43,313 bases of DNA, taken from Octopus bimaculoides (taxonomy: Eukaryota). Positions 3,154-42,749 of the stretch are shown here, in pieces. Position 1 is the stretch's first letter. Every line of letters begins with the position of its first letter. The DNA lies in NCBI RefSeq assembly GCF_001194135.2, contig NC_068987.1, positions 38,785,487 through 38,828,799 on the forward strand, given 5' to 3'. Below the pieces are notes generated by a model, which worked only from the letters and a program-made list of their open reading frames with translations, was not told the origin of the DNA and ran no database searches. The position numbers and the translations under genes are program-made.

Positions 3154-3327
3154 CTCCTCGACTACCACCAAGGTTTTTCAGTGCAACTCTGGCTTTGCGG
3201 ATGTCAGCATCAAGCTCTGGATAGCCAGCGGCTTCACATTCCATTATTGCTTTATTCAATGTATCGACATCTTTCTTCCTAATCGCCATATTCAGCTGAT
3301 CATGTAGTTCGTTCGGAGACTTAACAT
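3154..3327 (-). CDS. Repeat exon E30 (type A), 174 nt; only exon with a consensus GTAAG donor
   Basis: AAAG|AT..GGAG|GTAAG; [57 protein letters not shown]. Confidence 0.92.
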
Positions 3328-3370: not shown

Positions 3371-3408
<38 letters not shown>

Positions 3409-6400
3409 GTATTATACATATATATAAGTTAATCAGAGATAAAAGCAGGTATATTTTTTATAGTCCATCAGGATTAAAATGAGAGATAGGAAAAGACGGA
3501 AAAATTGGAAAGATTTACATCTGTGTTTGAACGACTGGTTGCAGTTGATAGCGAATACAAAACATTATAAGTGTACAAACGTAGACAGAATGTTGCAAGG
3601 GAGAGAAAATAGGTAATAGGCGGGAAGGGAAAGAGAAAAGACAAGAGGATGAGAAGCTGATTAGGGTGAGGTGGTTAGAAAAAATATGGTGAGGTGGACA
3701 CTGAAGAATAAAAATGGAATTCCTGAATTAAGTGGAAGTGATCGAGTAGAAAGGAAAACATTCATATAAACCGTTGGTGGCATGATTAGAAATTTGATTA
3801 TGAAAAGTTACTCCTTGATTTCTTGAGTGTGGAGACCAATGATGTTCAAAGAAGCCATAGACTAAGAGGTATTATGGAATGACCTATTGTATTGAAGTAG
3901 TTAGCTACAAGGTTCTCTGCCTTTAACCTTATTGCAACTACTCACCGGACCTCCAGCGTCTGCTGTCTTTTATCTCTCAACTGTTAACTTGAACCTGTAA
4001 AATGATTCTCTCTCCACTACCTCTACAGTTTTACTTTCCACTTATGTTACGTTATATACATACAACGGAGTGATACCATTCGAAAGCAAAAACGATGTAA
4101 AGTGCGTTGTGACCAGCGACGTATAACAGCATCCAATAGCCTGGTCGATCACGTGATCACATTACACTCACACACACACAATTATATATCATCATCATCA
4201 TCATCATGTATCGTGCGCCTGCAGCGCATTGATGACACGACAAGTTCTCTAGCTGCCTTGCCACTCTTGTCCAACAACTACTGTTCTTTACTTGCCTCTT
4301 GATCTATTACCCTCTACTCTTCCTTCCATGATAATGCTTTCCAGACCTCTGCTTCTTCAAATATGGCCATAATAGATGAGCCTCTGGTTTTTCCACAATG
4401 TTCAGGAGTTGTCTTTTCCCTACTTCATTTATCTAATGATCCTTGTAAGAGACTTGTAACATTCTCCTACACACCCACAAACGCATTGATTATATTTTCT
4501 TCAGATTTATTCAGAGTCCATGCTTCCCAACATAAATGCCAGTTGGTGGAAAAACTAAACTCAGATTATCAAAGGGTGGATTAGAGTTCATGTGCACAAG
4601 ATCAAAATACAAAGTTCTAATGTTTTACACCACACATTATGGTATGTGCGTATGTGTGAATGCGCGTACAATGTTGATATTTGTATACTGTATTATAGTT
4701 TACGCTGGTTAATGTGTACATGTGCGTGTGTGTTTGTGGGCATGCGTGTGCATGTGTACATAAGCGTGTTTGTGGGTGCGTTTGGAGTAAATAATAGGAA
4801 GACACAAAAATTTATAGTGGTAAAAAAGTTATAAGAAATGTCAACAATATTCATTCCGTTTTGTTTCCTATTACTGTCTTAACATATGATGCTATAAAAC
4901 AATTTGAAGTATATCATTTCAATTTTGTATTCACGTAGGAAAGTTATTTGCAGACATGCGAAACATGCGATTGGGAATTTGCAAACCGACAGATGTCTAA
5001 GGAAATTTATTCATGCACTTAGGTTGAGAAATAGTCATTCTAACCTCCAGTACCACCTCCAAGGATGTTTGACAATCTTCTGGCTTTTTGTAAATCATTT
5101 TCTAGCTCTGGCAAACCTGCTGCAGTACATTCATTAATAATTCGATCTAGATTTCGTTTATCTTTTTCATTCATGGCATCTTTTAATTTTCGTTTTATTA
5201 TGTCTGGAGACAGTGATCCTAAGAATAGAAAGTACATACAAAACTGAAGAAAATAGCTCTAAATAGTCTATTGATTCAGATTGGATAAACAGAAGTGACA
5301 TCACGATTGGATGAAGTGCATGAAAAATCTACATTATCAACATCTTAACTTCTCTTTTTAGGATAACAAATATTAAAAGCAAATTGTTTTTATCGACAAA
5401 TTTGATTTCACAATCCATGCATATGTTATATCAAATATATTTTTATCAACAACACATGCACATATCTTTTCAATGTAGAATATAAAAGAATTTCGTGAAA
5501 ATTACTTTCGCTATGTTGCCGAAAAAATGAGACAGAAATATATCTAACCTCCTCGACCACCTCCAATCTGTTGCAATGTATTTCTAGCTCTGCAAAGGTC
5601 TGGCCCAAGTTCAGGGTATCCGGTAGTCTCGCAAACATCAATAATATTTTCCAAAGCTCGCTTATCTTTTTGTCTTGTCGCTTTCTTGAGTTCTTCACGT
5701 AATGCGTCAGGAGTGGGAAGACTTGGTCCTAACAACCATAATAAATGTCTGTTTAGATATTTGTTTACATTTGCATAATCATTTCACACATATAAAGACT
5801 TATATGTACGAACGTGTGTGTACATATATACATGCATATAAACACGCGCACGCACGCACGCACACACACACACATACACACACATACACGCGCGCGCGCG
5901 CAAATATTATACAAATAGATTACACTAATGACAGCTTGTGGCAGTAATATTCCATAGCGATACTTTAGAAAGCGAATCAATTCTTTCGGAACTGAAAGTC
6001 ATAGATGTAATGAGATTAACGTAAAGTGGTGCCCAAGCCAATATCATTAGCCAAAGCATCTTTTTCTATTAAATTTAACTGAATCAACTTTCTTTAGTTT
6101 TTAAGTGAATCTCTAATTCAGACAAATCCATTTGATATATTCTTGAATTTATGTCTTTATTTTTAATTGAGCAGGAAATTTCATAACAATTTTCGTATTT
6201 AATCCGTAACTACTTAATTGACAAGGATATTGATAAGTAATTTTTGCAATCACAGTTTTAAACATCAAATAAATTATTATTGCACTGTGCGCTTTCAGTT
6301 TTACTCCAGTGGTTAGACATATAAATCAGACATCTAAATGTGAAATAAAAATTTTGTATCTTCACCAACATTATAGATCAGCAATAATTTGTTGATCAGA

Positions 6401-13100: not shown

Positions 13101-16100
13101 TATGCATGTATGTATGCATATATGTATATATGCATGAATACACGCGAACCGAATATCCATTACCAAGATGAAAAGTCGCTTGAAATGGCCCAGAACCTCA
13201 TCTTTCATGTAAGAAAACAAATAACTTTCCATTACGTGTATAGTAGTCTGGTGTTTGACTTGGTGTATAGTAGCTTTGTGTTTGGCGTTGCAAACGTGTG
13301 CTCAAGAATTGAGCATTTTAAACTTAATTTTGATATACAGCTGTTTCATGTGTATTAAATAAGAACAAGGTATTAAGTAAAAGAGAAAATAGATTATTTC
13401 ATTTGATGCTATTACACAGTAGCTGGAGTAAATTACTCATGGAAATATCATTCTTAAAACGCCTAGAAACCGAGTACTCTAAGACAACCACACGTCTATA
13501 TATTAGAACTGGCCTGAGATAACACATCTAGCGCTAGGAAGATGTGCACTGATAGTTTTATTGCGAGCTCTGACACTAACCAAGTAGAGTTGCGATGTAT
13601 CTCAGCTTATATGATATCAAATGTGTATCCAACATATAAGTCTCCAAGACAGCTTCATGCTAACATATCTTCTTAACACATGCACCTTTTGATTTTATTA
13701 TTAAGAGAATAAATATACATACCTGCTTACAAAGTTCTACACGCATGAATAAATCGTGAACAATAACATAACCATAAATTTAATCAAGAAAAAATGTCTC
13801 CATAACACTGCTCCATCACAACCTACTCTACAACCTAATAATCAATACTATGCAGCTACACCCAACATAGCTGAGAAACAGAGACTATATAAAGCCAAAA
13901 TTAATTTAAATGCATCACAGTCCGATGATGGCTTAGCTGGACGAAACTTCGAAGTCACTGTTAATGTTATTCTTGTTAAAGAGTAATGAAAGCAGTGTTT
14001 AATAAGAGAAAATAGTGTTTTCTAAGAAGCCAAACGAAAAGATAGTCCAACAAAAAGATAGCTCAACTAAAATTATACAAACAAGAAGAAGATGATGATG
14101 ATGAAGACGACGACCAGGTGAAACATATTACGTCTATTGGCTCAGTAAAACAGTACTTTTTCTACTCTATGCACAAGGCCCGACATTTTTGGTGGGGAGG
14201 AGGCCAGTCGATTAGATCGACCCCAGTATGTAACTGATACTTAATTTATCGACACCGAAAGAATGAAAGGCAAACTCGACTTCGGCAGAATTTGAATTCC
14301 GAACGTAAAGACAGACGAAATACCGTTAATTATTTCGCCCGGCGTTCTAACGCTTCTTATTTCTTTATTGCCCTCAAGGGGCTAAACATAGAGGGGAAAA
14401 CAAGGACAGAAAAATGGATTAAGTTGATTACATCGACCCCAGTGCGTAACTGGTAGTTAATTTATCGACCACGAAAGGATGAAACGCAAAGTCGGCCTCG
14501 CCGGAATTTCGCCCGGCGTGCTAACTTTTCTGCCAGCTCGCCGCCTTCTCACTAAAACAGAACAAGTCAATCACTGGCTTGATAAATTAGTTCTTTCTCC
14601 TTAGATATGTTGTCATATACTTATGTTAGCAATCATAATTATCCTCAAAGACTACGTTTTCCAGAACATATATTAATCCTTTCTGAGTCTGAATTGCTAC
14701 TACTCCTACATGCGAGAAATGAAATTTTTTTATTTCCCAAATTCTCAGTAAGCACAAACTGGTATTTAAAAATGATATTTAAATGATATTTAATTAGAAA
14801 TTGTAATGCTGCCTTTATTTGTTACATGTAAGTAAATAATGTAATATTCTTAATTTCAATTAATCCCATAGTGTACATGAATCGTGTGAAACAGCAAATA
14901 TGCTAACCTCTTGATATATCACGTATTTTTTCTAACTTTTCTCTTGCTTTATGTATATCGGAATCCAGTTCTGGCATACCGTGAGCGACGCATTCAACAA
15001 TCACATTTTCTATGGTAGACTTGTCTCCTTTACTGAGGGTGTCTTTCAATTTTTCGCGCAGAATTTCAGGAGATTTCATTCCTAGAATATTTTAGATACA
15101 AATTCTAGTTTTCCAGTTTTCTTTCATTTTTATATCGGTGTTTACAAAATCCACACATACATGCACATATTTGACGGAAGTGACAGCATAAGAAAATCAG
15201 CCTATTAGATATTTCGAAGAGTTGTAGGCATTAAAAGTTTATCATTACATACAAAAAAACTATTTTTCGGAAATTCCTAGTATAAGCATATTGGTAACAA
15301 CTTCATTGTTTTAACAATAGTCATCAAAATATTTGCGCGTCTATTATTTAGTGGATATACAACCACCCAATCTACTAACATTACTAGATTCTATAGAAGG
15401 CATGCAATTTAGCAGAGTTCTGACCTCGTCCACCACCGATGCTTTCTAAAACATCTCTAGCTTGACGTAAAGTACTCGATAATTCAGGATATCCGCTAAT
15501 TTCGCTTTCAGTTATGGCCTGTAATAAACTGCCCATATCTTTTTGCTCCATCGCAGTTTCAAGTTCATAGCGTAATGATTCGGGAGACTTAACATCTAGT
15601 AATGAAAACAGAATTCATAATATTAACATTCTAATTTTAATAAAAAATAGTAAGAGTAGTATGTATTTCAGTAATAAATATGTTTGGTTGTTAATATGAG
15701 GGTGAGCTACAAAGTTCAGAGACTAGCTATGAAGGAGTGATGCTAGAGTTGTGAAATCTTGCATGCATTAATTTTAATTCATTTTATTAATAACTGCATT
15801 GTTTATTTCCAGGTAAACTGACATCTGACTGCTCAAAGAAGCGACTTCTTTTGGAAGTCGACGAAATCTAGCATCATAGTGCTATCAAATACGTGCAGAA
15901 GTGTTTAGCCTCCCAAAGACTTCCATGCTCACTTAGTTGCTATATTAGGGGATAATGTTCCAGCTTTAGCAGAGTTATTAATGGTGCAAAATAGGTATCT
16001 GAATTTAGGAGAGGAACGGAGAGTCTTGAAATGACCCAGTTCTGGACTTCCTGCGACTGCAACCACTGAGGAAAACATTGATCGTGTTCATCACATAGTG

Positions 16101-19100: not shown

Positions 19101-20005
19101 AAGGATTGCTAGCTAACCTTCATAGCTTTCACCTAATTCTTCCAATAATTCTCGAGCTTTCTGAATTTCATGATCTAATTCGGGAAACCCTGCTGCAACA
19201 CACTCATTGATTCGTTTCTCTATTTTCTTTCTGTCTTTACGCCAAACAGCCTTCTTAAGTTTATCAAGAAGAGCTTCTGGTGTCTTGGATCCTATTAGCA
19301 TTACCAAAATAATAAAAGAAAAGACCCGTTTTAAATTATGTTTCCAAACTATTCCATATCATTCCCCACATATATGTTTCCACGTATTTACTCAATATTT
19401 AATAACAAATTAACTATATGGAGACACACAGATAGATTTAGTACGACAAAATTAGAAACTCGATAAGTCAAATATAATGACCCATAGGCAAATAGAGAGT
19501 TTAATAAAATATATACAAAGGAAGCCAACCTCCACGGCTTCCTGTCATTATTTCCAGCATATCACGAGCATCACTCAGTGGAAGACTTAATTCAGGATAG
19601 AGTACATTTTCACAGTCTTGGATAACTTTCTCTAGTTTATCTTTGTCATTCTCTTCCATAGCCGTTTCTAACTGACTGCGCAAAGTTTGAGACGGAATAG
19701 TCTCTACAGCCAAAAAGAAATACCAAACTTGAATGAATTTATTTTTTATACAAAATTTGCACTCAAATATTTTAGTTATATTGTAGTCATTAAACTGATG
19801 GACATAGAGTTATATTAAATATATTCATATTCAGAACCTGTGTGTCTGAGTATCATAATAACAACCGTTTGCTGTTTGCTCTTATTTATAACATGTAAAA
19901 TAATCCTCTATTTCTACAAACATCGACGTCTCATTCTTTTGTTGTTATACATATTATTATTATTATTATTAGTATTGTTGTTGTTGTTGTTATTATTATA
20001 TATGC

Positions 20006-27100: not shown

Positions 27101-30100
27101 TACACACACCTATTCATTCATATAAGCAAGCATGCATGTATACTCACATGCATACATGTGTTTATACATGTATAAATACATGTATAAATACGTGCATATA
27201 GATATGCATACAAACATACGTACGTACGTACATACATACATACATACATACATACATGCATGCATACATACACACACACACATACATACATACATACATA
27301 CATACATACATACATACATACATACATACATACATACATACATAGTCTTAACCATACGATCGTTGATTTTTCAGGAAATCTTGTTTAAATAAAAAATTAA
27401 AAAATCAATAAGGCACTTTAAATCGTGCATAGATATTTTGTTTCTGTTGTGTTTAAACCGATATTCATTTTGGATGGAATAATCCAGAGCCTGCAATGCC
27501 TGGAATCTTCTGCAATTTGAAGGACTCTAAATGTTCAAATACCGTCATCAACCGATATAAAACCCAATTCTTAATACAGCTTCATTATATAGCGAAACAT
27601 ATCCAAATTATTTGAATGCAGTGATTACATGACTTACCCAACGTAGATAAGATTAAAATTTAGAAAAACTAGTAAAATTTGAAGTATTTAAAGAATTCTA
27701 ATTATGCTAAAGTACCACCTGGAAACAAATCTAAAATACAAGTAAATGTGTTTGCAGGTAGTTACACAGCTCACCTCGGAATTATGTATTTTTGAATTCA
27801 ATCACACAGGATAGCACCTTAAATTAAGTTACTTCTTCCACATCTTAAAGATACCCAGAGCTTTCTGGGAGACATTTGGTAGACGGAAACTGTGTGGAAA
27901 CCCGATGAAACAAGTGTTTCTGTTGTTGGGTGATACACGTAATCCCCCAACATCTTCCGTACATTTCCAGGGTCTTGTTTCCTGCCAGAATTCTGGCCGG
28001 ATACAGGCCTCAGGTGTAAGAATAAATTCTTTCCTTTCTACCTCTAATATCATGTCATGTAAAGAGATATAGATGATATCATCCCACATAAGAAAACATC
28101 AAAACTAACCTCCGTAACCGCCCCCTAAACTCTTCAAAGTGTTTCTTGCACGACATAGGTCGTAACCAATTTCCGGAAATCCTGCATCTTCGCATTCTTT
28201 GATAACTTTCTCCAATTGTGGTATATCCATATCTTTTATAGCATTATCTAGTTCGGTTCGTAAATCATCTACTGATTTAAGATCTGTTAACATAAGTATT
28301 TATTATTTTAAATAAGAATAAAATAATATCAACAAAAATAAATTCATGCTATATTTTAATCTAATCAAATATTTCAAATTACTCAGTGATAAGTATCAAA
28401 CCATATTATTTTCTTTAATCATTCATTATATACTCTACATTATGATTTCATGTGCAAATTGTATTAAAATTTTGAGATTTAAATTAAATATCATCAACTG
28501 TAGATGTTTCAGAATTATTTTCATCGATGTTAAACAAGTGTAAACATGAAAATTAATTTCTAAAAGTAATCTGATTAAATGATTTTATAAATATAAAAAA
28601 ATATTCTTGAAATTTTCCGAACCTCCAGATCCACCATCTAGAATATTTAATATGTTCCGGGCATGTTGGATTTCGAAATCGAGTTCTGGCATTCCAGCAG
28701 ACACACTTTCGCATAGAACTTTATCTAAAGCTAATACATTTTTTCCTTCAATGGCACTTTTTAATTTTTCAAGAAGCTCACTAGCTGATTTACTCCCTAA
28801 ATGTTATAATACACAAAAGAGAATTATACAGAGAACTATAAATTCAAATTTCATAAAGTTGTTTATTCATATATATTTTTCTTCAAAACTACCGACAGTA
28901 TGATTTCTAGAAATTAACATGGATTTTCCTTGCGTATTTAATTTGTGAATTTTAATGTTCTAAGTTTACTTCAATATACATTTAAAAGCTAATTATGGAT
29001 TTATAGAAGAGTATTTTATATGTCTAGGCTTATGCAAATTTTCGTGACCTAATGAAGTTTCACATTATTATAAAATAATTCTAAATATAACTAAACTGAT
29101 CCCAATATTTAACAGATATACATTTTATTTATTCGAGAAGAATGTAATGGTTAGATTCGATGGATTTATAATGTGAAGAGTTGTAAGTGAATATTACAAA
29201 GACATTTAGTTCGATTCTTCAGGAATCTGCAATTAATAGCCGTTTCAAAACTGAATGATTTAATAGTAAAGTGATACAAGAAGATGGTTAACCTCCTCTA
29301 CCGCCTCCTAAATTTTCCAAGGTGTCGCGTGCACGACGTAGATGGTTACTAAGTTCAGGATAGCCAACAGATTCGCATTCTTCAATTAATCTCTCTAAAC
29401 GTGAACGAGATTTCTGTGCAACAGCTGATTCTATTTCCTCCTTCAGAACTTCAGCGCTAGCAAGGACTAACAAAGGAGACAAAAATATCTTTATTATATT
29501 CAAACTCTGTTATCTCAGATACATACGAGAATGTGTAAAAATCGTTACTAGTCAGAAAGAGTAAATTATGTGCGCGCGCACACACACACACACACATAGG
29601 TACAAATATACAAGCAGTCTAGCCATTTTTTTTTCCAAATGAGATTACAAACTGGATTTCGCAAGATAATGGGTAGTACAAACTAGAGTGTTAGTTATTT
29701 CCCTGATTTTGTATACTGATGCCACTGGTGGTATTTTCAAAAAATTAATATCAGTTATATACTTACATATATATATATATATATATATATATAAGATATA
29801 AAATTTAAAATACGAAATTTGATAATTGTTTTAATACCACATGGTATGCACATGAATACGTTTGTGCTATCTGTTATCATACGAAATCATGTTCACATTC
29901 ACTCGAACAGATAGTTCAACAACCAGTACTATTCAAACTATAACTGAATATTTGCAATTTTTTTTTAAACTATTGGTATCGTTCAACTGCCAGAAGAAAT
30001 CATACATCAACTAATATAGTATTGGTAACACATTCTATTTCGTTACTCACACGTATACATACATATATGTATATATGTGTATGTAAGCATATGTAAATGC

Positions 30101-31147: not shown

Positions 31148-34100
31148 NNNNNNNNNNNNNNNNNNNNNNNNNNNNNNNNNNNNNNNNNNNNNNNNNNNNN
31201 NNNNNNNNNNNNNNNNNNNNNNNNNNNNNNNNNNNNNNNNNNNNNNNNNNNNNNNNNNNNNNNNNNNNNNNNNNNNNNNNNNNNNNNNNNNNNNNNNNNN
31301 NNNNNNNNNNNNNNNNNNNNNNNNNNNNNNNNNNNNNNNNNNNNNNNNNNNNNNNNNNNNNNNNNNNNNNNNNNNNNNNNNNNNNNNNNNNNNNNNNNNN
31401 NNNNNNNNNNNNNNNNNNNNNNNNNNNNNNNNNNNNNNNNNNNNNNNNNNNNNNNNNNNNNNNNNNNNNNNNNNNNNNNNNNNNNNNNNNNNNNNNNNNN
31501 NNNNNNNNNNNNNNNNNNNNNNNNNNNNNNNNNNNNNNNNNNNNNNNNNNNNNNNNNNNNNNNNNNNNNNNNNNNNNNNNNNNNNNNNNNNNNNNNNNNN
31601 NNNNNNNNNNNNNNNNNNNNNNNNNNNNNNNNNNNNNNNNNNNNNNNNNNNNNNNNNNNNNNNNNNNNNNNNNNNNNNNNNNNNNNNNNNNNNNNNNNNN
31701 NNNNNNNNNNNNNNNNNNNNNNNNNNNNNNNNNNNNNNNNNNNNNNNNNNNNNNNNNNNNNNNNNNNNNNNNNNNNNNNNNNNNNNNNNNNNNNNNNNNN
31801 NNNNNNNNNNNNNNNNNNNACCCCCCCCTCCTTGTCCCCCCCTCCTCTCTCTCTCTCTTTCTCTCTGGTATTTTGATTAAGATTTGTTATGAAATTTATT
31901 GCAAAGTCTAACCTTCACGACCACCAGTAACAGACCGTAACGTGTATTTTGTTTTTTGCAGGTCGAAGCTTAGTTCCGGGTATCCGGCAGCTTCACATTC
32001 CTTAATCACTATTTCTAAAGCTTCTTTGTCTTGTTTTTGACGTGCTTGCTTCATTTCTTCTCGCAATATATGAGGGCTTTTGAAACCTGTTAAAAATGTT
32101 CAGAGAATTGGAATATTGTGAAATATATCATATAGTATTCTTTTATTTTTCGTCAGATAAACTTTCGAAATATTAATCACAGTAGAGAAGTGTCGTATTT
32201 CGTATCAAATAGAAATATTAAATTTTAAGAAGAAACTTCATATTTTCGCTTTAAACTATAGATATTTCAAAATTATGTAGTATTGCCTATTTGTAGTTTC
32301 TTATACCAGTTCGACTGAGAGATAATTATTATAAAAGATCAAGCTAAAATTGTTAACATTAGTTTTAGAAAAAAGAAGAATAATGTTATTTAAACTATCA
32401 ACTCTACATCTTACCTTTAAGGAAAATTGAAATTGAAATATTGAAATTGAAAAATAATTTTATTTCCATAATAATTTGCATAGGAAATATTTTTTATATG
32501 AAATAATATTTTTTAATGCTTAATTCACATATTTGATAATAATTTTCATATTAATACTTCATTGACAAAAAATTATAATTCTAACCTCCTGCACCACCTT
32601 GTAATATGATGAGAAAGTCTCGGGCTTCTTGTATATCTGAATCAAGTTCTGGTATACCAGCTGACACGCAGTCATTAATTGTTTTTTCTAACTTTACGAC
32701 ATCTTTCTCTTTAATTGCATTTCTTAGTTTTTCCAAAAGGTTCTCTGTAGTCTTAGCATCTAATAACCAAATTAAAATAATTTATAAAGTGTTTTAGTTT
32801 ACTGATTGCACTAATTATTTAAAATCTCATATGTTCTTTATAAAATGTCCGAACGTTTTTCAAATTCCAATATTTAGTTATATAAATAGGACTACATTTT
32901 GATAGAATTATCATCCTTATAAAATCATTCGCCCACTTTTTTATGACGTTTCAATTTTAATTGAACATGATGAGAATTGACTTTCTTACACATTATAATG
33001 TCATTTACGTACTTCGTGATGTCATTTAAAGATTCTTTTTGTAATTTAATTAACATTCTATAATTTGAATTTAACTGATAAAGATGCTGGTTATTAAAGA
33101 CATGTAGATAGACATGAAACCGCTAACCTTCACTATGTCCACCTAAACTTTGCAGAACACGCCTGGCTTTACGAAGAGTAAAAGAAATCTCAGGAAACTT
33201 GGCCTTTTCACTCTTATTAATAGCTTTTACCAATTCTTGAACGTCTTTCTGTCTAGAAGCGTCTTTCAGCCAGGCACGTAGTGCGTCAGGAGATTTAGAA
33301 TCTGATAGTCACAAAATGATTATTTAATAAAGAAATGTTGTTTAGAAATATCTCACACTCATACGCGTGCGCACATACACACATTTTGTATTTTTGTGTA
33401 TCAAATACATACATATGAGGGGAAGTCAAAAGTTACCCGCACTTTCACCATAACATCTTTAATATGATCACACTGCCTTCTGTGCATGCGTGCTTATAGT
33501 TGGTAGTATTGTGATCGTGTGATCGAAGTTTGAGCCTCATCGCGCCATTTGTCTTTCTGGCTTTACAGTGGCCGCTTCACTAGCAATGCTCACCAAAAAA
33601 AGAACGAAGAGCAGTGATCCGATTTCTCTGGTGGGAAGGTGTGTCAGGTGTTGAAATTCATCGGAGGCTTTTAGCACAATACGGGGACAGTACACTACCG
33701 CGTAGAAGTGTGTATGAGTGGATCGAGAAGTTTAAAAATGGCCGGACAAGCGTGACGAACGAAGAGGGAGCAGGACACCTATCANNNNNNNNNNNNNNNN
33801 NNNNNNNNNNNNNNNNNNNNNNNNNNNNNNNNNNNNNNNNNNNNNNNNNNNNNNNNNNNNNNNNNNNNNNNNNNNNNNNNNNNNNNNNNNNNNNNNNNNN
33901 NNNNNNNNNNNNNNNNNCAAGCTCGAGAGACTGTAATAGTGAACCGGTTCACCATTACCATCTCCCGAGTCACTGTTCTTTGTCCTTCATTGGCGCACAA
34001 TACTAGTGGAGCAGGGATGCTTACACTGTAAAACCAGAAAGAAAAATGGCGTGATCAGGCTCAAACTCTGATCACGTGACCACAATACCACCAACTCTAA

Positions 34101-34239: not shown

Positions 34240-36725
34240 CATATAAACAATGGGCACTTGTGATACGTATTTACTGTGTAGAAACAACATGTCGCTGCAA
34301 AATGCTGTGACAGCATTTCGAAATTGACTATTTCGTAAGCTTTGCAGATTTGACTGGGAGAGTATACTGTCAAGCTTTTTCCGAGATTATACAATGTGAA
34401 GACGTATGTACACTTACAACCCAAACATTTACAAACCCACCTCCTACATAAACATACATACATACATGTATGTATGCATGTATGTATATATGCATGTACG
34501 TATAGGATTTTCGGACTAAAGTTGGAAAAGAAAACAGAGTCACCCATCCAAAAGTTTTTAAAGTATTTTATGAATTTAAAAGTATGAACTAATCATGGCT
34601 GGGAGATAGCAGTTTATTCAAATTAGCCGCTTTTAGCTTTCACCACGGCCTCATGGTGGCTATTAAACCTGGTGTATGCATTCCTTACTATACCCCTGTG
34701 AAGACCTTCGAACATCTCCATGATCTTCGCAAGCAGTTATCCTTGGTGTTGCAGACAGAGTAATTGGTGTCTTTCTCAACACACAGTAATCCATGGGATT
34801 ACAATCAGAGGAATTTATGAAGTAAAAATTGGGGCTAGTAAAGTCGTAGAAATTCTTCGACAACTACTTCTGACTTTTCCGGAGGTATGGCAAGGAGCCG
34901 AATGGGATATATGGTACATATACGTATGTGCTATATATAGAGAGAGAGAGGAGTGAGGGAGGGGAGAGGGGAGGAGAGAAGGGGGAGAAGGGGAGGAGAG
35001 AAGGGNNNNNNNNNNNNNNNNNNNNNNNNNNNNNNNNNNNNNNNNNNNNNNNNNNNNNNNNNNNNNNNNNNNNNNNNNNNNNNNNNNNNNNNNNNNNNNN
35101 NNNNNNNNNNNNNNNNNNNNNNNNNNNNNNNNNNNNNNNNNNNNNNNNNNNNNNNNNNNNNNNNNNNNNNNNNNNNAGAAATAGGAAGAGATATAGACAG
35201 AAAATGAAATAATATTAATCCATATAAAACAATACTAAATTATTACAATAATAGCTTTGCAAATAAATGTCTCAATTTGCATTCGGAATGCAATATTTTT
35301 TTATCTTCAAAGAGAGCACTCGCAATATATTCCCAACCTTTTGTGGTATTGTCCAGGTTACCCAAAATTTGTTGAGCATTTTCAATTTCTGAGTCTAATT
35401 CTGGTAATCCTGCTGCAATTGCCTCGTTTATAATTCTTTCCAAACTTAGTCTGTCTTTTCGTCTAATAGCTCGCTTCATCTTATCCGCAATGACTTCTGC
35501 ATTTTTTACTCCTTCAAGATGTAAAGCGAAGTTACACATTCAAACATTGCTTCGTATTAAAGATCGTCATGCACCGATATATACATTTAAATGACAATCA
35601 TGACTCAAAATTTGATATTTCAATTGCATCTTTCAAAATATGACAAAATCAAAAATCTGTTTATATAATTTACACATTTTACTGAAAACTTCTAGAAAAT
35701 AATGTATTAAGAAATCTGGTAGAAAATTAAATGCTTTGAATTAATAATTTATTTTATTTCTGAAAATAAACGTCATCACGCTGCTAACCTCCTCGTCCAC
35801 CGCCCAAACTCGTCAAAGTATCTCTAGCTTTTCGAAGTTCCAACCCTAGTTCTGGATAGACAGCTTCCTCACAATCAATAATAACAGCTTCTAATTTGCC
35901 TTGGTCTTTTTCGTCGATGGCCATTTTTAACCGACTTCTCAATGCATCGGGAGTCATGTAGGCTAATAAATTGAGAAACCACATAAAATTATTTTGAAGG
36001 ACCTAGATATCACAATTTATAAACCATTTAGTTTAAAGTAATTCATAAGTTACTTTTTTCTATTATTATACATCGCACAGAATATTACATACATTGTATG
36101 AATATACTTAGAAATAAAATATTTATGAAATGTCTAATTGAATGATAAAGTTTCAAAACAAATAAAAGGGCAAATAAAAGTGCTAACCTCTACGACCACC
36201 ACCTAACTTTTTCAAGATGTCCCTAGCTCGGCTTATATCAGAATCCAATTCAGGAAATCCAGAGGCAACACATTCATTAATAATTCTTTCCAGAGTCGGC
36301 CTGTTTTTCTGTAACATTGCAGACTGCAATTTTTCACGCAAACCTTCTGGGGTTTTATGTCCTGAGAATATGTTTGAAATTATAATAAAATGAAATTCCA
36401 CAAAATAGAAATTATTCGTGCTTGTGTTCAATATAAGTGTTTATCGGTCCCTTGTTCAAGGTATAATTGTTTTGAACGTGATTATTCTTTTATTCTCTAA
36501 TTTAATAATTTGATTGCAGCCATGCTGGAACACCGCCTTGAAAGGTTTTAGTCGAACAAATCGACCTTGGGACTTATTTTTTAAGCCTAATACTTATTCC
36601 ATGGACCTTTTTCGTCGAAGCACTAAGTTACAAGGACGTAAACACACCAGCACCGGTTGTTAAGCGGTGATGGATGACAAACAAAGACACAATATATATA
36701 CGTATATATATATATATATATATAT

Positions 36726-36780: not shown

Positions 36781-36881
36781 TATATACATACATATACATG
36801 TATGTATGTGTNNNNNNNNNNTAGATAGATAGATAGATAGATATATAGATATATATATATACATACATATACATGTATGTA

Positions 36882-36922: not shown

Positions 36923-39900
36923 GACGGGCTCCTTTCTGTTTCCATCTACTGAATCCACTCTCAAGGCTTTGGTCGGCCTGACACTTGCTCAAGGTGCCAC
37001 ACAGTGGGACTCAGCCTGGAACCATGTGGTTAAGAAGCAAGCTTCTTACCACACAGCCACGCCTGCGCCTAAATGAGGAAATTTTAATACTATTTAACAA
37101 ATTCTCAACACGACCACGCAGAAATATATGCACGTAGATGTTCATATGTACGTCACATTTATACAAATCTTATTTATATACGGTTTGCACTGAAGAGCAT
37201 TCTCACACTTTACTCTCAGTTGATCAAACGTTATTTGGAAATATAGTTATCTACGCGGTGTTGTTAAAGAGTATGAGGTTCCGTTAGACAACAACCTGTT
37301 CGGAAAATGACCTGTAGACAAATTGTGTTGTAAACATATCTTCAGTTTGATTAAATAACTGTGAAATGGCTTTTTAAAAAGCAGTCTTGCTTTGCAGAAG
37401 CAACGTAAATATTAAGGTTGTTTTGCTTCAAAACTTAGAAGCAAAGAAATAATTCACGGAATCTTTTTACTATTTCATATTATGGTTTAAGTAAGTATTT
37501 ATTGATACAAAATTTTATTATTTCTGTTTGCTTAATTTTCCTAAACATTCCTCAAGTTCTTACTGCAAACCACCCCAAACGTATTTTTACAGATTCGCAA
37601 GTTTCTGAACAGATGTAGTTTTTCATGCCAGTTACGAAAATCACAATTTCTGAAGAAATAAATAATAAAAATGTTACGAAACTTTAAAGCCAAACTTTTT
37701 TGTAATTTTAGCCAGTCAGATCTAACCTTTCTCTTCACACTGTGGAGATATTACTGATAGTGCCATGCTTTTTCTTTTCCGTTTCTTTTTTCTTTTTGCA
37801 AAAATTGACAATTACATTAAATCATATTCTGGCTTACAATGCGTTTCTTACACATGCTTTTTAATTGAACTGAATTAAGCTTTGTAAGTGCTTGACTAAA
37901 AGAGGATTAGAAGCCTAAGAAGATGACAGCTTAAAATAGACCTGATAAAACATTGCGTAGAATTTGAATTTAAGAAGTGTTTTCAACGTCTTTCAATGAT
38001 GGCAGGCGAATCAGACGTACAGTAGTTCGTTGTAGGATATAAATAACATTACCACTTGCTTATCAGGAAACTTGTAAGTTCGATCAAACACACAAACAAA
38101 CTAAGATGAGTGACTACAATACCCTGCCTCCGCGTACGCGCGCAAAGTATTTGACGAAAATGTTTGAAGCATTTGACGAAAGAAAATTAAAACAGACTTT
38201 TTGCAATGAAATTTTGCGATACTAACCCTAAATCCTAACTCTGAACAGTAACCCAAAATCCTATCCCAAGCCCTAATCCTAATCTCAAAACGGTTGTGAT
38301 TTTGGTAGCTAGAATGAAAAACTACATATGTGTACAAATTTTAAATAAAATTGTAAGCGGAAGTTTAAACCGAAAACCTTTCCTAACGATTTAATTAATA
38401 CGCAATTAACGATTCAATTAATGCGCTATTAAAAATAATAGATGTGATTTGCAGAAACTAATTGCTAACCTCCGAGGCCACCTCCTATGCTTTGCAAAGT
38501 TGTTCGAGCCCTACGAAGGTCGCTACCCAGTTCAGGGTAACCAGCACCTTCGCATTCATCAATGGCTTTCTCCAAATGTAATCTATCTTTCCAGTTGACT
38601 GCTTGTTTGAGTTTATCACGTAAAGCTTTCGGTGACATTTTACCTGAGGCAATCATAAATAAATCATAAAATAAATTACAAAATTACCTGAGGCAATCAT
38701 AAAATAAATAAACATTGGAGAGCGGGAAACAGTAATAATGTATAATTAAAGCAAATATTAAATTAACTGTGTTATTCACTAGTGGAGATTGTAACACACG
38801 CAATTCAACACATTACAAAAACATTGTGAAAACAATCTAATATTATATGTGCAGATGACACATAAAAATTGTTTCTTTGATACATAACCAGACATTTCTA
38901 ATTAGCTCCTACCTTTTAATACTAAATTTACATGTCTTCAATGTGTAATGTACAGCGAAACAAAATTTATGTCAAACTAATAAATCTGGAATTGTTAAAT
39001 GAAATTATTTTAATCCAATTAAAATATCTGATCCTTCGCTTTTATTGATAGTATTTGTTAGAATTTTCACATTATTTTGTTTGGGGGCATCAATTCTCTG
39101 TTTGCATAATAGTTGTTGTTTAGTTTTTAGAACCAAAACGTATTTAAGATTTTAATTCTTTCAAATATGTACAAAAAGAAAATTAATTACGGCATTAAGT
39201 AGAAAAAATTTACCAATTATGATTCAATGCAAATCGACTCTTTTAGAAATGTCAAAATATTCGAGTGAACCTAACCTCCAACTCCTCCTTCAAGTAGATC
39301 AAGTACATCTCTAGCTTCGTGTACTTCTGTTTCCAGTTCTGGAAAACCCGATGCTACACATTCATTTATAACGCTTTCCAAATGAGGTCTATCTTTCCAT
39401 CTTACTGCCATCTTCAGTTTGCCACGTAAACTGTCAGGATTTTTTAGTCCTAACAAACCAAAAATATATTGACAATAAAAACACCTTTACTTTCCGTGAG
39501 CATTGTCATGTCAAAATGCTACATACTGGCTCGAATGTTTCCCTTATTCAAGGTACAATCAGGTTTATTTAATAAATACATTCACACAGTCCGATACGCA
39601 AGCACAATTTTATTTATATTAAAAATATACTCTGCATAAAAGTATACATCAATATACCTGTTCATGAAGACACTACCATCACATACACACACACTTACAA
39701 CACACACACACACATACAGCACGCAACACAAACACACATACAGCACGCAACACAAACACACATACAGCACGCAACACAAACACACATACACACACAAACA
39801 CACAAAACACATACATGTACACGCAACACTCATACATGTGAATATAATGTATTTTAATATTTCGCTCAGGTTTAGCGAGACTAATAATCTGGTGAACTCA

Positions 39901-41428: not shown

Positions 41429-42749
41429 CTGTATGTCTACACACCCAAAATTCTTTAATTGATTCTCTGTTTTGTTCGAGTTTTAAAACGTCAAGCGACA
41501 CGCATGATTACACTCTGAAGTCAAAACACAAAAACGTCTAAGAACTGGGCTAACCACTACTTATCCCAATAGTTTGTTTCTTTTCTTATCTCTTAAACAA
41601 TCTCGATGACCTAACAAACATTTCGTTCTTTCCCCCTTAATCCAACAATTTTGGTGATTGACATATATACATACTTAAGCCACACACACATGTGTGACTA
41701 TATAGATAAACACATGCGCTAATACTCCTATCTTTGCTTTGTGTGTATGTGATTGTCCGAGTACATTTGTGTACAGGCGTATGTGTACGGGCGTATACAT
41801 GCATTTTTGTACATGTCTGTGTGCGTGCGCGCGTGAGTGTGTGCGTCTGTGTGAATACAAGTATATATCTATATCTATATATATATATATATGTATATGA
41901 TCGAGTGTGCGCGTCTACCCCTATATCTCCCAATATGTGCATGCTTTTTAATACTTTGGGATAGAACTTTCCAAAATTATAAACATAAACTTTCTCACTT
42001 ATAACGCCTGCATGTACTGAAAATGTAACTTTCCCAAATAAAGTACACTCCATATTCAAGGCTCTGATGAAGCTATAGGATGTTATCCTGGAACTCAACT
42101 AAGAGTCTCCTACATCATAGAGCAGAAGCAGTTGTAAGCTAATGAAGTTCATTACATAACATTTGTTTTTTCCGGTGTCATCTCTTTAATTTCTGTGTAA
42201 TTACATTATATTCATATTTCAGTAATTATGCTATTAAATTCTTGTCATATTTTCACGTCGACCCCTCACATAAATATTCATACATGCATTTCACTGATCC
42301 TCAGAACGTAAATTCAGTGGGAATCACTGACAACCACCTTGATATCAGTGTCAAAACCGTCCTGTGGTATTACAATGATGTTTTTATAAACAGATACCAT
42401 GCACCACACAATTCCTTGCGTATGCATATACTTACATATACACACACGCACGCGTAGATATTAATACCGGCATACACGCAAAAATACAGAATAGTGCATG
42501 TATGTTCACAGAATGTGCATACGTTTGCATATCGTTTTTCTTTACATTTCAATGAAAAAATCATAGCAGTCTAACCTCCACGACCTCCACCTAAACTCTC
42601 CAGTGCATTTCGAGCTTCGCTCAAATCTGAACTGATCTCAGGATATCCAGCTTCTTCACATTCAGATATAGAACGTTCTAAACTTGATCTGTCCTTCTGC
42701 CGCATTGCTGCATTTAACTCGTCTCGTAATTTTTCGGGTGACTTATGAT
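3154..42749 (-). CDS. Partial multi-exon gene: tandem array of 30 homologous phase-1 exons encoding ~58-aa helical repeats (1740 codons when spliced); tentatively the C-terminal repeat region of a hillarin/KY-like protein
   Basis: Seen: 30 exons with AG acceptors and AG|GT donors, all lengths divisible by 3, no internal stops, shared motif KD-x3-LE-x2-I-x-EC-x3-G[YF]PEL-x3-[LI]-x2-AR-x2-L. No initiator exon or clear terminal exon in the window. The family link is recollection only and needs BLASTP. Confidence 0.9.
5045..5218 (-). CDS. Repeat exon E29 (type B), 174 nt
   Basis: TTAG|GA..GGAG|GTTAG; [57 protein letters not shown]. Confidence 0.92.
5549..5728 (-). CDS. Repeat exon E28 (type A), 180 nt
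   Basis: TTAG|GA..GGAG|GTTAG; [59 protein letters not shown]. Confidence 0.9.
7060..7188. repeat. (GT)n microsatellite
   Basis: Direct reading. Confidence 0.95.
7857..8080 (+). mobile_element. SINE, family 1 (ggcggcgagctggcagaaacgttagc... head)
   Basis: Same head at 22561 (+) and inverted at 12166 and 14546; B-box-like gagttcaaattcc. Confidence 0.75.
8085..8424 (-). mobile_element. SINE, family 2 (taggcgcaggagtggctgtgtggtaag... head), diverged
   Basis: Reverse-complement similarity to 9975-10382, with an internal (CA)n tract. Confidence 0.65.
9840..9959 (+). rRNA. 5S: 5S rRNA gene copy, probably a pseudogene (altered 5' helix arm, no oligo-T terminator)
   Basis: tacggccatatcacgttgagagcaccggttctcgtccgatcaccgaagttaagcaacgtcg...tacttagatgggtgaccgcttgggaaacctaggtgctgttagc matches the metazoan 5S pattern, including the internal control region, over ~120 nt. 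Confidence 0.9.
9975..10382 (+). mobile_element. SINE, family 2, near full length
   Basis: taggcgcaggagtagctgt head, ggttccaggttcagtccc B-box-like motif, central TA/TG microsatellite, cagtcaaatgactgaaacaagtaa tail. Confidence 0.8.
11950..12166 (-). mobile_element. SINE, family 1
   Basis: ctaacgattctgccagctcgccgcct is the reverse complement of the family-1 head. Confidence 0.7.
14150..14546 (-). mobile_element. Two adjacent or nested family-1 SINE copies
   Basis: atcgaccccagt...ttaatttatcgac...gaaaggatgaa block occurs twice; head ctgccagctcgccgcct at 14530-14546. Confidence 0.7.
14908..15081 (-). CDS. Repeat exon E27 (type B), 174 nt; absent from ORF track
   Basis: CTAG|GA..AGAG|GTTAG; [57 protein letters not shown]. 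Confidence 0.9.
15425..15595 (-). CDS. Repeat exon E26 (type A), 171 nt; absent from ORF track
   Basis: CTAG|AT..CGAG|GTCAG; [56 protein letters not shown]. Confidence 0.88.
15695..16880 (+). mobile_element. Mariner DNA transposon, full length, decayed transposase
   Basis: Imperfect TIRs ta-tgagggtgagctacaaagttca / tgaactttacaactgaccctcg-ta. Motifs [39 protein letters not shown] and [14 protein letters not shown] lie in different frames. Confidence 0.85.
17120..17305 (-). CDS. Repeat exon E25 (type B), 186 nt with acidic linker
   Basis: TTAG|GA..GAAG|GTTAG; [61 protein letters not shown]. Confidence 0.9.
17625..17798 (-). CDS. Repeat exon E24 (type A), 174 nt
   Basis: GTAG|CT..GGAG|GTTAG; [57 protein letters not shown]. 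Confidence 0.92.
18169..18342 (-). CDS. Repeat exon E23 (type B), 174 nt; absent from ORF track
   Basis: GCAG|GG..GGAG|GTTCG; [57 protein letters not shown]. Confidence 0.9.
18716..18889 (-). CDS. Repeat exon E22 (type A), 174 nt
   Basis: TTAG|GA..GGAG|GTTAC; [57 protein letters not shown]. Confidence 0.9.
19118..19291 (-). CDS. Repeat exon E21 (type B), 174 nt
   Basis: ATAG|GA..GAAG|GTTAG; [57 protein letters not shown]. Confidence 0.92.
19530..19703 (-). CDS. Repeat exon E20 (type A), 174 nt
   Basis: GTAG|AG..GGAG|GTTGG; [57 protein letters not shown]. Confidence 0.9.
19995..20600. repeat. Compound (TA)n/(TATAC) low-complexity tract spanning an N gap
   Basis: Direct reading. Confidence 0.9.
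20845..21018 (-). CDS. Repeat exon E19 (type B), 174 nt; absent from ORF track
   Basis: TTAG|GA..GGAG|GTTAG; [57 protein letters not shown]. Confidence 0.92.
21070..21162. repeat. (GT)n microsatellite
   Basis: Direct reading. Confidence 0.95.
21492..21665 (-). CDS. Repeat exon E18 (type A), 174 nt
   Basis: GTAG|GA..GGAG|GTCAG; [57 protein letters not shown]. Confidence 0.9.
22151..22324 (-). CDS. Repeat exon E17 (type B), 174 nt; absent from ORF track
   Basis: CCAG|GG..AGAG|GTTAG; [57 protein letters not shown]. Confidence 0.92.
22561..22791 (+). mobile_element. SINE, family 1, with target-site duplication
   Basis: Flanked by the direct repeat agaaacattta (22550-22560 and 22792-22802). 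Confidence 0.8.
23092..23265 (-). CDS. Repeat exon E16 (type A), 174 nt; absent from ORF track
   Basis: TCAG|CT..GGAG|GTTAG; [57 protein letters not shown]. Confidence 0.92.
23480..24450 (-). mobile_element. Decayed RTE-like LINE fragment
   Basis: Minus-strand remnants such as [22 protein letters not shown] and [12 protein letters not shown], interrupted by stops and frameshifts; boundaries approximate. Confidence 0.55.
24977..25150 (-). CDS. Repeat exon E15 (type B), 174 nt; not shown on this strand in ORF track
   Basis: ATAG|GA..GGAG|GTTAG; [57 protein letters not shown]. Confidence 0.9.
25478..25636 (-). CDS. Repeat exon E14 (type A), 159 nt via a shifted acceptor; absent from ORF track
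   Basis: CGTTAG|AA..GGAG|GTTAG; [52 protein letters not shown]. No AG at the 174-nt position, so the 5' boundary is less certain. Confidence 0.82.
26301..26655 (+). mobile_element. SINE, family 2, diverged
   Basis: aaccacatggtt..caatcctactgtacggcacctagggcaagt head and tccatgactgaaacaaa tail. Confidence 0.6.
26843..27016 (-). CDS. Repeat exon E13 (type B), 174 nt
   Basis: TTAG|GC..GCAG|GTTAG; [57 protein letters not shown]. Confidence 0.9.
27225..27343. repeat. (CATA)n microsatellite
   Basis: Direct reading. Confidence 0.9.
28110..28283 (-). CDS. Repeat exon E12 (type A), 174 nt
   Basis: ACAG|AT..GGAG|GTTAG; [57 protein letters not shown]. Confidence 0.92.
28623..28796 (-). CDS. Repeat exon E11 (type B), 174 nt; not shown on this strand in ORF track
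   Basis: TTAG|GG..GGAG|GTTCG; [57 protein letters not shown]. Confidence 0.88.
29293..29466 (-). CDS. Repeat exon E10 (type A), 174 nt
   Basis: TTAG|TC..GGAG|GTTAA; [57 protein letters not shown]. Confidence 0.92.
30171..30572 (+). mobile_element. Penelope-like element fragment (GIY-YIG endonuclease C-terminus)
   Basis: [65 protein letters not shown] follows the Penelope endonuclease pattern. Confidence 0.8.
31913..32086 (-). CDS. Repeat exon E9 (type A), 174 nt; absent from ORF track
   Basis: ACAG|GT..GAAG|GTTAG; [57 protein letters not shown]. Confidence 0.92.
32586..32759 (-). CDS. Repeat exon E8 (type B), 174 nt; absent from ORF track
   Basis: TTAG|AT..GGAG|GTTAG; [57 protein letters not shown]. 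Confidence 0.92.
33128..33301 (-). CDS. Repeat exon E7 (type A), 174 nt; absent from ORF track
   Basis: TCAG|AT..GAAG|GTTAG; [57 protein letters not shown]. Confidence 0.88.
33414..34179. mobile_element. Mariner-derived foldback element with two 5' ends in inverted orientation
   Basis: ta-tgaggggaagtcaaaagttacccgcacttt / aaagtgcggataatttttgacttctcg-ta TIRs, >200 bp of inverted subterminal similarity, and an N-terminal HTH remnant [33 protein letters not shown]; centre is an N gap. Confidence 0.75.
34560..34900 (-). mobile_element. Tc1/mariner transposase 3' fragment
   Basis: [12 protein letters not shown] resembles the (W)PPNSPDLNPLDY motif; downstream gaggccgtggtggaaagc (EAVV) resembles the Tc1-like C-terminus; boundaries approximate. 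Confidence 0.6.
35338..35511 (-). CDS. Repeat exon E6 (type B), 174 nt
   Basis: GAAG|GA..AAAG|GTTGG; [57 protein letters not shown]. Confidence 0.88.
35789..35962 (-). CDS. Repeat exon E5 (type A), 174 nt
   Basis: TTAG|CC..GGAG|GTTAG; [57 protein letters not shown]. Confidence 0.92.
36188..36361 (-). CDS. Repeat exon E4 (type B), 174 nt
   Basis: TCAG|GA..AGAG|GTTAG; [57 protein letters not shown]. Confidence 0.92.
36510..37071 (-). mobile_element. SINE, family 2, with expanded internal (GATA)n/(TA)n microsatellite
   Basis: accacacagccacgcctgcgccta is the reverse complement of the family-2 head. Confidence 0.75.
38470..38643 (-). CDS. Repeat exon E3 (type A), 174 nt
   Basis: TCAG|GT..GGAG|GTTAG; [57 protein letters not shown]. 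Confidence 0.92.
39276..39449 (-). CDS. Repeat exon E2 (type B), 174 nt
   Basis: TTAG|GA..GGAG|GTTAG; [57 protein letters not shown]. Confidence 0.92.
39711..39790. repeat. 24-bp minisatellite (acacatacagcacgcaacacaaac) x3
   Basis: Three direct copies; explains the YSTQHKHT repeat in the spurious ORF. Confidence 0.8.
40050..41348 (+). mobile_element. Mariner DNA transposon, near full length, decayed transposase
   Basis: Motifs [65 protein letters not shown]; ends aaaagtaaccggaa / ttccggtttc..cccctcgta. Confidence 0.85.
42576..42749 (-). CDS. Repeat exon E1 (type A), 174 nt
   Basis: ACAG|AT..GGAG|GTTAG; [57 protein letters not shown]. Confidence 0.92.

Follow-up and report, generated by a model that had tools for sequence, protein, structure and literature searches.

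A non-consensus thymine maintained at the splice donors of a tandem exon array in Octopus bimaculoides

Splice-signal stops, module arrays and the octopus locus

In the short introns of Paramecium, stop codons within the splice signals terminate the translation of intron-retaining transcripts. In Yarrowia lipolytica, introns lie in phase 2 behind a GTGAGT donor, and the stop embedded in this splice signal ends the translation of transcripts that retain the intron (PMC2911113). The present analysis concerns a stretch of 43,313 nucleotides from Octopus bimaculoides (contig NC_068987.1, positions 38,785,487 to 38,828,799), called the window below, in which 30 exons on the minus strand encode one repeat module each and end mostly at a GTTAG donor, whose third intron base is a non-consensus T that places an in-frame TAG directly behind the splice junction. 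As in Yarrowia, the in-frame stop overlaps the 5′ splice site, so that a failure of splicing ends translation at once. In Yarrowia, however, the consensus donor itself supplies the stop, which matters there since the phase 2 introns are tiny, whereas the octopus stop needs the non-consensus T at donor position +3 and phase 1. The octopus introns moreover measure 225 to 9179 nt, chance stops would follow within about 16 codons in any case, and the pattern is confined to one exon family.

The secreted and membrane forms of IgM are a familiar example of intronic polyadenylation, and in Drosophila the giant sallimus gene gives rise to kettin, a short isoform that ends in an intron. In intron 3 of CstF-77, a weak donor is coupled to an intronic poly(A) site, creating a composite terminal exon (PMC3708835). 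The octopus array is comparable to such composite terminal exons in that a suboptimal donor with a close in-frame stop (22 of the 30 exons) would truncate the protein if the transcript ended in the intron. Known composite terminal exons use one dedicated site with a defined and conserved poly(A) signal, usually in a long intron, whereas the octopus array offers dozens of candidate sites with no detectable poly(A) bias or conservation.

Arrays of tandem-module exons with differential splicing are found in titin (Ig and PEVK regions) and nebulin, and the octopus gene appears to share with them one module per exon, a uniform phase, a very long array and annotated isoforms that vary greatly in module number. 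Neither array is known for one shared non-consensus donor base or for stops that overlap the donors. In domain content, the octopus gene resembles KY, hillarin and LTD-1, with Transglut_core and Ig-like_KY domains and a C-terminal domain conserved with annelid and gastropod relatives; unlike these relatives, which carry 1 to 6 repeats, octopods have expanded the repeat to dozens of one-exon modules. The octopus array thus shares features with splice-signal stops, composite terminal exons and module arrays, and fits none of them fully.

The exon array and purifying selection on its donors

The motif AGGTTAG occurs 23 times on the reverse complement of the whole window and not once on the plus strand. 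When open reading frames (ORFs) were extended upstream of each AG/GT (the slash marks the exon-intron boundary), a family of ORFs of about 58 codons with shared sequence was obtained, and exon starts were set by acceptors that preserve phase 1-1 and follow a pyrimidine tract. A repeat profile built from the 30 translated exons returned exactly 30 exon-sized matches, all on the minus strand, which is the strand of the gene, and nothing comparable elsewhere in the window. The array extends from window position 42749 down to 3154, the span named in an earlier note made on this DNA from the letters alone. The exon length is 174 nt in 26 of the 30 exons and 159, 171, 180 and 186 nt in the others, always a multiple of three. 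Each exon carries a single module, a 58-residue three-helix unit with a Gly-rich linker, and all 30 are in phase 1-1 and thus symmetric, so that the skipping of any exon leaves the reading frame intact.

The donors of these exons are highly regular. The bases -2A, -1G, +1G and +2T are found in all 30, +4A in 26 and +5G in 28, while position +3 is T in 27, C in two, A in one and G in none, contrary to the purine consensus GTRAG. The first five intron bases are GTTAG in 21 donors, GTTAA in one, GTTGG in two, GTTCG in two, GTTAC in one, GTCAG in two and GTAAG in one. Reading through the donor gives Gly-stop in 22 of the 30 exons, with TAG or TAA in frame at positions +3 to +5. The corresponding counts of the earlier note (21 GTTAG, one GTTAA, T at +3 in 27 of 30, AG/GT throughout) were all reproduced, and its remark that the +3 T is the one non-consensus base, and the one that creates the in-frame TAG, agrees with the tally given here. 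In other respects the introns have U2-type features, namely GT and AG termini in 30 of 30 cases and T-rich acceptors over positions -3 to -20; the +3 T departs from the U2 consensus and does not exclude U2-type splicing. U12-type introns were considered and rejected, as no donor resembles RTATCCTT. Pairing between donor and branch site (GUUAG complements CUAAC) was likewise rejected, with zero occurrences of CTAAC in the last 60 nt of any intron.

Several lines of evidence indicate that this regularity is maintained by selection, as the earlier note had supposed for the donor. Given an intron T content of 0.34, the probability of finding T at +3 in 27 or more of 30 donors is 3e-10, and intron positions +7 to +20 have background composition. 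Four-fold sites across the exons are near saturation (pairwise identity 36.5% versus 30% expected) and nucleotide identity between exons is low (mean 52%, maximum 63%), so that the 30 donors are effectively independent. On the exon side, the -2A is the third base of GGA in 20 of 20 Gly codons of that column, while the other Gly columns are mixed. The retention of T in 27 of 30 donors amid randomised neutral sites shows that the donor, including the +3 T, is under purifying selection, which is T-specific as described below; from the pattern we infer why it may act. The exons and their donors are as follows (subtype A or B in brackets; 174 nt unless stated).

Exon 1 (B), 42576..42749, minus strand: donor AG/GTTAGA, read through as Gly-TAG
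Exon 2 (A), 39276..39449, minus strand: donor GTTAGG; the L004 orthologue also has GGTTAG
Exon 3 (B), 38470..38643, minus strand: donor GTTAGC; the L004 orthologue also has GGTTAG
Exon 4 (A), 36188..36361, minus strand: donor GTTAGC
Exon 5 (B), 35789..35962, minus strand: donor GTTAGC
Exon 6 (A), 35338..35511, minus strand: donor GTTGGG, T kept without a stop; first in-frame stop after 31 codons
Exon 7 (B), 33128..33301, minus strand: donor GTTAGC
Exon 8 (A), 32586..32759, minus strand: donor GTTAGA
Exon 9 (B), 31913..32086, minus strand: donor GTTAGA, followed by a gap of 672 N
Exon 10 (B), 29293..29466, minus strand: donor GTTAAC, read through as Gly-TAA
Exon 11 (A), 28623..28796, minus strand: donor GTTCGG, no stop
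Exon 12 (B), 28110..28283, minus strand: donor GTTAGT
Exon 13 (A), 26843..27016, minus strand: donor GTTAGA
Exon 14 (B), 25478..25636, minus strand, 159 nt: donor GTTAGC
Exon 15 (A), 24977..25150, minus strand: donor GTTAGG
Exon 16 (B), 23092..23265, minus strand: donor GTTAGA
Exon 17 (A), 22151..22324, minus strand: donor GTTAGA; a near-identical ORF of a related octopus (P0018) also reads Gly-stop
Exon 18 (B), 21492..21665, minus strand: donor GTCAGC, no stop
Exon 19 (A), 20845..21018, minus strand: donor GTTAGA
Exon 20 (B), 19530..19703, minus strand: donor GTTGGC, no stop
Exon 21 (A), 19118..19291, minus strand: donor GTTAGC
Exon 22 (B), 18716..18889, minus strand: donor GTTACC, no stop
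Exon 23 (A), 18169..18342, minus strand: donor GTTCGA, no stop
Exon 24 (B), 17625..17798, minus strand: donor GTTAGA
Exon 25 (A), 17120..17305, minus strand, 186 nt: donor GTTAGC
Exon 26 (B), 15425..15595, minus strand, 171 nt: donor GTCAGA, no stop
Exon 27 (A), 14908..15081, minus strand: donor GTTAGC, followed by the 9.2-kb intron 27
Exon 28 (B), 5549..5728, minus strand, 180 nt: donor GTTAGA; present in O. vulgaris CAI9725887.1 (P0152)
Exon 29 (A), 5045..5218, minus strand: donor GTTAGA; joined to exons 28 and 30 in P0152; the L007 orthologue has GGTTAG
Exon 30 (B), 3154..3327, minus strand: donor GTAAGC (consensus); the L007 orthologue has GGTTAG; the gene extends past the window

Other loci were compared with the window (L001, L002, L004, L006 and L007). 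Two of them, L004 and L007, are ungapped contigs of a second octopod (ENA ERZ21867824) with the same A/B array, and GTTAG is found in 12 of 16 and 10 of 16 of their unique homologous donors, respectively, together 22 of 32. Window exons 2, 3, 29 and 30 have clear orthologues there (n = 4), and GGTTAG is kept in three of the pairs. Across the four pairs, identity at codon positions 1, 2 and 3 is 72%, 84% and 44%, and no alignment of the introns is possible beyond +5. In the fourth pair, the GTAAG of exon 30 probably derives from GTTAG by a change in the lineage of the window, judging from its orthologue. Pooling the donors of the window, L004, L007, L001 and L006 (n = 71, from three data sets) gives T at +3 in 56, C in six, A in four and G in five. 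In a set of 100 distinct ORFs of homologous exons, taken from public assemblies, 59 read Gly-stop, Gln (CAG) comes next in 15, and about 12 at most carry a purine at +3, although such ORF-based counts may over-represent the read-through forms, as longer ORFs are likelier to be called.

The ordinary octopus donors (n = 10) come from the O. bimaculoides KY exons, which contributed three introns, and from a KY paralogue of O. sinensis, which contributed seven. A purine occupies +3 in all ten of these and in 12 of 13 donors of the Haliotis relative, and T occurs in none of either set. The contrast between 27 of 30 repeat donors and none of ten ordinary octopus donors is significant (Fisher p = 3e-7). 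The possibility raised in the earlier note, that T at +3 might simply be common among the donors of this genome, is therefore not borne out by the ten ordinary donors, a small sample.

Passive inheritance of the motif, in which a functionless sequence was carried along with every copied exon-intron unit or is kept alike by local gene conversion, is already disfavoured by these data and is regarded as very improbable. All exons do stem from one ancestral unit, and tandem duplication seems still to be enlarging the array: at 90-4310 of L007, four repeat exons make up a 1356-bp block of which more than three identical copies follow one another in tandem, either through continuing expansion or as an assembly artefact. 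Yet no two exons of the window exceed 63% identity, both four-fold sites and introns from +7 are randomised, adjacent synonymous sites are not homogenised, and orthologous donors have been kept where third codon positions have diverged to 44% identity. In at least two octopods, most of about 70 introns that diverged independently retain one and the same non-consensus base at this position of the splice site, a rare and clean case of selection on such a nucleotide.

The A and B exons alternate strictly along the window with a single break, a B-B succession between exons 9 and 10, which coincides with the 672-N gap at 31148-31819. One A-type exon is probably hidden in this gap, as the alternation suggests, so that the 30 exons are a lower bound and the number is probably 31. 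The seven N runs of the array, at 11153-11724, 20375-20544, 26450-26459, 31148-31819, 33785-33917, 35006-35176 and 36812-36821, all lie in introns (27, 19, 13, 9, 6, 6 and 3, in that order) and cut no exon or donor; several adjoin AT, TA or similar simple repeats. Continuity of the array across the assembly gaps cannot be proven; an exon hidden in one of them would leave the frame unchanged, each exon being a closed unit of phase 1-1.

Possible reasons for a thymine at +3

The predicted energy of the duplex with U1 is highly uniform among the repeat donors (-5.75 kcal/mol, sd 0.96). The ten ordinary octopus donors have a mean of -6.8 kcal/mol over a range of -1.6 to -11.0 (Mann-Whitney p = 0.11 for the difference), and the repeat donors are predicted to reach -9.3 kcal/mol with a purine at +3 and -5.5 kcal/mol with C. 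By these predicted energies, the repeat donors are moderate and not clearly weak, and the +3 T keeps them from becoming very strong. The earlier note had described the donors as consistently weak; their uniformity and a slightly lower strength than average were found, but their values fall within the ordinary range and the difference is not significant.

These energies bear on a first explanation, in which splicing is tuned: the +3 mismatch would hold all array donors at the same moderate strength, with UAG arising incidentally through phase 1. Such tuning may serve the regulated inclusion or skipping of in-frame modules, or the orderly splicing of many similar exons. Both the exon side (GGA-G) and +4A/+5G pair strongly with U1, and the uniform energy of the donors corresponds to a much weaker pairing than the one predicted with a purine. 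Donors with a +3 purine have lost +4A or +5G in 6 of 9 cases, while those with a pyrimidine retain AG in 51 of 62, implying that donor strength is held within a band. A mismatch kept for its effect on strength would also account for the persistence of T in donors where no stop results, and the symmetry of the exons, which lets skips stay in frame, would suit regulated inclusion. The annotated repeat numbers do vary (16 in O. vulgaris, about 10 to 13 in Argonauta, and a 5242-residue model in O. bimaculoides), although such differences between gene models may be annotation artefacts. Under tuning, however, C at +3 should serve equally well, yet it is 3- to 4-fold under-represented relative to T; weakness is attainable in many ways, yet the same base is used after saturating divergence; and the donors are not clearly weaker than the ordinary ones. 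A depletion of T at +6 in the window (1 of 30, p = 6e-5) was rejected as a feature of the family, since it is unseen in L004, L007 and L001, and it lends tuning no help. Tuning is the main rival of the reading preferred below, though one we rate as unlikely; should it be the target, the array offers a natural experiment on keeping donor strength uniform across many repeats.

Among +3 pyrimidines, C accounts for 6 of 62 in the DNA sample, against a neutral expectation of about 30%, and for 15 of at least 76 in the ORF sample; the binomial p is 7e-5 for the deficit among 49 pyrimidines (before L007 was added) and 0.01 in the ORF sample. Because C is predicted to pair with U1 about as poorly as T and is nevertheless scarce, generic weakness does not explain the T, and T itself is favoured. 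With phase 1 and with +4A and +5G in place, U is the sole base at +3 that puts a stop, UAG, directly after the last Gly codon. This T-specificity is the best argument that the stop is the selected feature, and a factor that recognises U or UAG would explain the T equally well.

Such a trans-acting, U-specific factor, bound to GGUUAG or UAG and controlling the whole array, could be a UAG-binding repressor of the hnRNP A/B type or a variant U1 snRNA, for which a candidate would carry A opposite +3 and a 5′ end reading ACUAACCUG. The T-specific selection together with the strict +4A and +5G would fit it, and 19 of the 30 acceptors likewise end in TAG, mostly followed by G. In addition, hnRNP A1 and A2 are reported to act through UAG-containing elements (PMC7527060), which counts for this explanation. 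On the other hand, UAG is not clustered downstream of the donors (13.2/kb versus 12.1/kb in intron interiors), and a perfect match to a variant U1 would favour U at +6, where it is found in 1 of 30 window donors and at about background elsewhere. A factor of this kind is considered improbable.

The reading we prefer, tentatively and at somewhat less than an even chance, is that the in-frame TAG behind the donor is what selection acts on; this estimate takes in the regulated version discussed further below. For it to hold, we infer that unspliced or prematurely ended transcripts exist and are translated, and that a clean end of the protein matters. The array exons would be joined by ordinary U2-type GT-AG splicing at donors that share the family-specific non-consensus GAG/GUUAG, and a donor might be left unused, either because the intron is retained or because the transcript is cleaved and polyadenylated prematurely in one of the AT-rich introns. 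Translation would then end exactly at a module boundary (...GGxGG-COOH), where in the absence of the donor stop it would extend 9 to 31 codons into the intron. Stop codons in a terminal exon escape nonsense-mediated decay (NMD), as would the stop in a prematurely ended transcript. By chance alone, the first 300 nt of the introns contain many poly(A)-like hexamers (4.6/kb), which makes premature 3′ ends plausible. If the stop is indeed the target, the translation of unspliced or prematurely ended transcripts shapes splice sites in an animal with long introns, and the array could reveal a way of setting the length of a modular protein.

A number of observations weigh against selection on the stop. 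In-frame back-up stops after the TAG are not in excess (17 in frame versus 29 and 15 in the other frames), and the eight stop-less donors of the window have no compensating early stop, the first one following at 9 to 31 codons as expected by chance. T is retained in 10 donors where no stop forms (TGG, TCG, TTG and TAC), and the TGG state of exon 6 appears to be common to an ORF of another species (P0057). In 8 of 21 donors TAG is followed by C, which is a poor termination context. In the distal array (L001), the donors are heterogeneous, reading GTTTG, GTGAG, GTTAG, GTAAG, GTTAG, GTTGG and GTGGG. Finally, since a chance stop would occur within about 16 codons anyway, the advantage of an immediate stop must be small.

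The regulated version of selection on the stop, proposed in the earlier note, is a programmed length ladder, in which regulated competition between each weak donor and intronic polyadenylation would yield proteins of graded repeat number, each ending in ...GGxGG. A selected Gly-UAG overlapping a non-consensus donor would then recur at some 50 or more module boundaries in succession and act as a built-in molecular ruler. As a special case of selection on the stop, the ladder draws on the same facts of donor, phase and T-specificity, and CstF-77 intron 3 is an established case of a composite terminal exon whose 5′ splice site is weak (PMC3708835). A gene model ending in this manner is also at hand: the RefSeq protein XP_052825468.1 (P0001, LOC128248363, 192 aa; L001 10001-13191), nested within the range of the 5242-residue model, has an intronic start, links three repeat exons and finishes with the read-through of a GTTGG donor (...S-G-W-F-stop), a donor at which the O. 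sinensis model splices.

Nothing in the sequence of the introns supports such a ladder. AATAAA and ATTAAA in the first 300 nt have no excess on the sense strand (4.6/kb versus 5.3/kb antisense), hence neither enrichment nor strand bias, and 6 of 29 complete introns have none; these tests neither refute nor support transcripts that end in repeat introns. Intronic polyadenylation favours long introns, whereas 16 of the 29 introns are shorter than 520 nt, and the intron sequence is not conserved between the octopods. Every truncated form would lose the conserved C-terminal domain, and precise losses of introns point to germ-line splicing of the junctions. The ladder as such is therefore judged quite unlikely, within the broader estimate given above. 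The probability left over by selection on the stop, tuning, a trans-acting factor and passive inheritance is assigned to explanations that have not been thought of.

The intron losses are precise fusions of two neighbouring repeat exons, seen at L004 5884-6225 and 9971-10315, L007 10061-10408 and L006 about 1065-1401. They occur at differing junctions, both A-B and B-A, and one of them is common to a further species (P0004). In the O. vulgaris protein P0152, exons 28, 29 and 30 follow one another with the junctions as predicted. Together, the exon fusions and gene models indirectly suggest that the predicted junctions are spliced in mRNA expressed in the germ line. Logan contigs with two repeats per ORF were rejected as transcripts, being genomic exon fusions.

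The gene, its relatives and other elements of the window

Homologous proteins identify the window as an internal (middle) stretch of a giant octopod kyphoscoliosis-peptidase/hillarin (KY, transglutaminase-like) gene. A first homology search with eight window repeats returned zero matches, and a profile search of 1.84 billion representatives returned 238. The named matches include the O. vulgaris protein CAI9725887.1 (P0152, "Transglutaminase-like domain-containing protein", 2069 aa), the O. bimaculoides protein P0151 ("kyphoscoliosis peptidase-like, partial") and small O. bimaculoides and O. sinensis models consisting of repeats only. P0152 has a KY N-terminus, a coiled coil, 16 repeats that include window exons 28, 29 and 30 in order (about 96% identity), and then a non-repeat C-terminal region. 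The Pfam domains Transglut_core and Ig-like_KY were found on P0151 and P0155; they are N-terminal in the octopus orthologues and lie outside the window. On chromosome CM046607.1, the O. bimaculoides KY exons (L002) and the distal array (L001) are about 170 to 200 kb apart, and the 5242-residue model spans L001. The array covers roughly 200 kb in octopods, with one-exon modules by the dozen, and the whole array probably holds about 70 to 90 modules, a figure estimated from lengths and not counted.

With this analysis, a 58-residue three-helix repeat that had not been characterised and a large octopod gene with poor annotation are defined. AlphaFold2, run on the alignment of the 30 sequences, predicts a confident three-helix bundle (pLDDT 87) followed by the Gly-rich linker at lower confidence. 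The module matches no Pfam family, and neither a sequence search nor Foldseek gave a significant match in the PDB. Long repeat proteins from protists (Rhodelphis, Polykrikos and others: P0008, P0009, P0037, P0119, P0136 and P0141) match the repeat profile as well, and by these sequence matches the three-helix module appears to be far older and more widespread than the octopod array.

The relatives also bear on the origin of the donor. The earlier note had supposed that an ancestral terminal exon ending GGA-GGT-TAG was duplicated, and had suggested that low-copy orthologues might still end there. In octopods, the array is internal, as the O. vulgaris and Argonauta proteins run on into a conserved non-repeat C-terminal region ending ...QRKY. 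The low-copy relatives, the annelid Owenia with one to two repeats and the gastropod Haliotis with six, have their repeats between the KY domain and the conserved C-terminal domain, into which their proteins continue. The repeat exons of Haliotis are mostly in phase 0, with GTA or GTG donors. An ancestral terminal exon is thus not supported, and the GTTAG unit of one module in phase 1 seems to have arisen in octopods and to have been amplified afterwards.

The gene models differ considerably in module number. P0152 passes from its second repeat directly to window exon 28, omitting exons 1 to 27, and the Argonauta model P0155 has its 10 to 13 or so repeats over a gene of 204 kb. These differences reflect either real large-scale exon skipping or incomplete annotation. 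In the literature, no paper was found on GUUAG donors as a class, and neither the SPLASH octopus paper nor the octopus mucus proteome paper contains anything on this gene.

Several minor features accompany the splice sites. Exons 1, 3, 4, 7, 8, 15, 21, 28 and 29 contain, 12 to 15 nt before the main donor, an extra in-frame AG/GT made of Gly-linker codons (such as TTAG/GTGG and GGAG/GTGG), the use of which would remove four to five linker residues and leave the frame unchanged. CA repeats close to splice sites can regulate splicing. Two (TG)n microsatellites, which are (CA)n when read along the gene, precede the acceptors of exon 30 (3373-3407) and exon 19 (21053-21162) by 35 to 46 nt.

Intron 27 (9.2 kb) contains repeats, a 5S rRNA copy and a gap. 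The 5S copy is a full-length match on the plus strand at 9840-9958 (Rfam RF00001, 97 bits, E = 5e-20), antisense inside the intron, and could represent a dispersed copy of the 5S gene, a pseudogene or the head of a SINE derived from 5S. Near it, at 10139-10385, lies a dispersed repeat that is about 90% identical to inverted copies at 2565-2808 and 3762-4006 of L001. A 66-bp tandem repeat in about four copies, GC-rich within an otherwise AT-rich intron and possibly SINE-related, occupies 2358-2623. Downstream of exon 30, at 1484-2177 on the plus strand, ORF fragments (…RLRWYGHVVRMDEDN…GRGRSRKTWDGVVKHDL…) resemble the C-terminal tail of a non-LTR retrotransposon reverse transcriptase.

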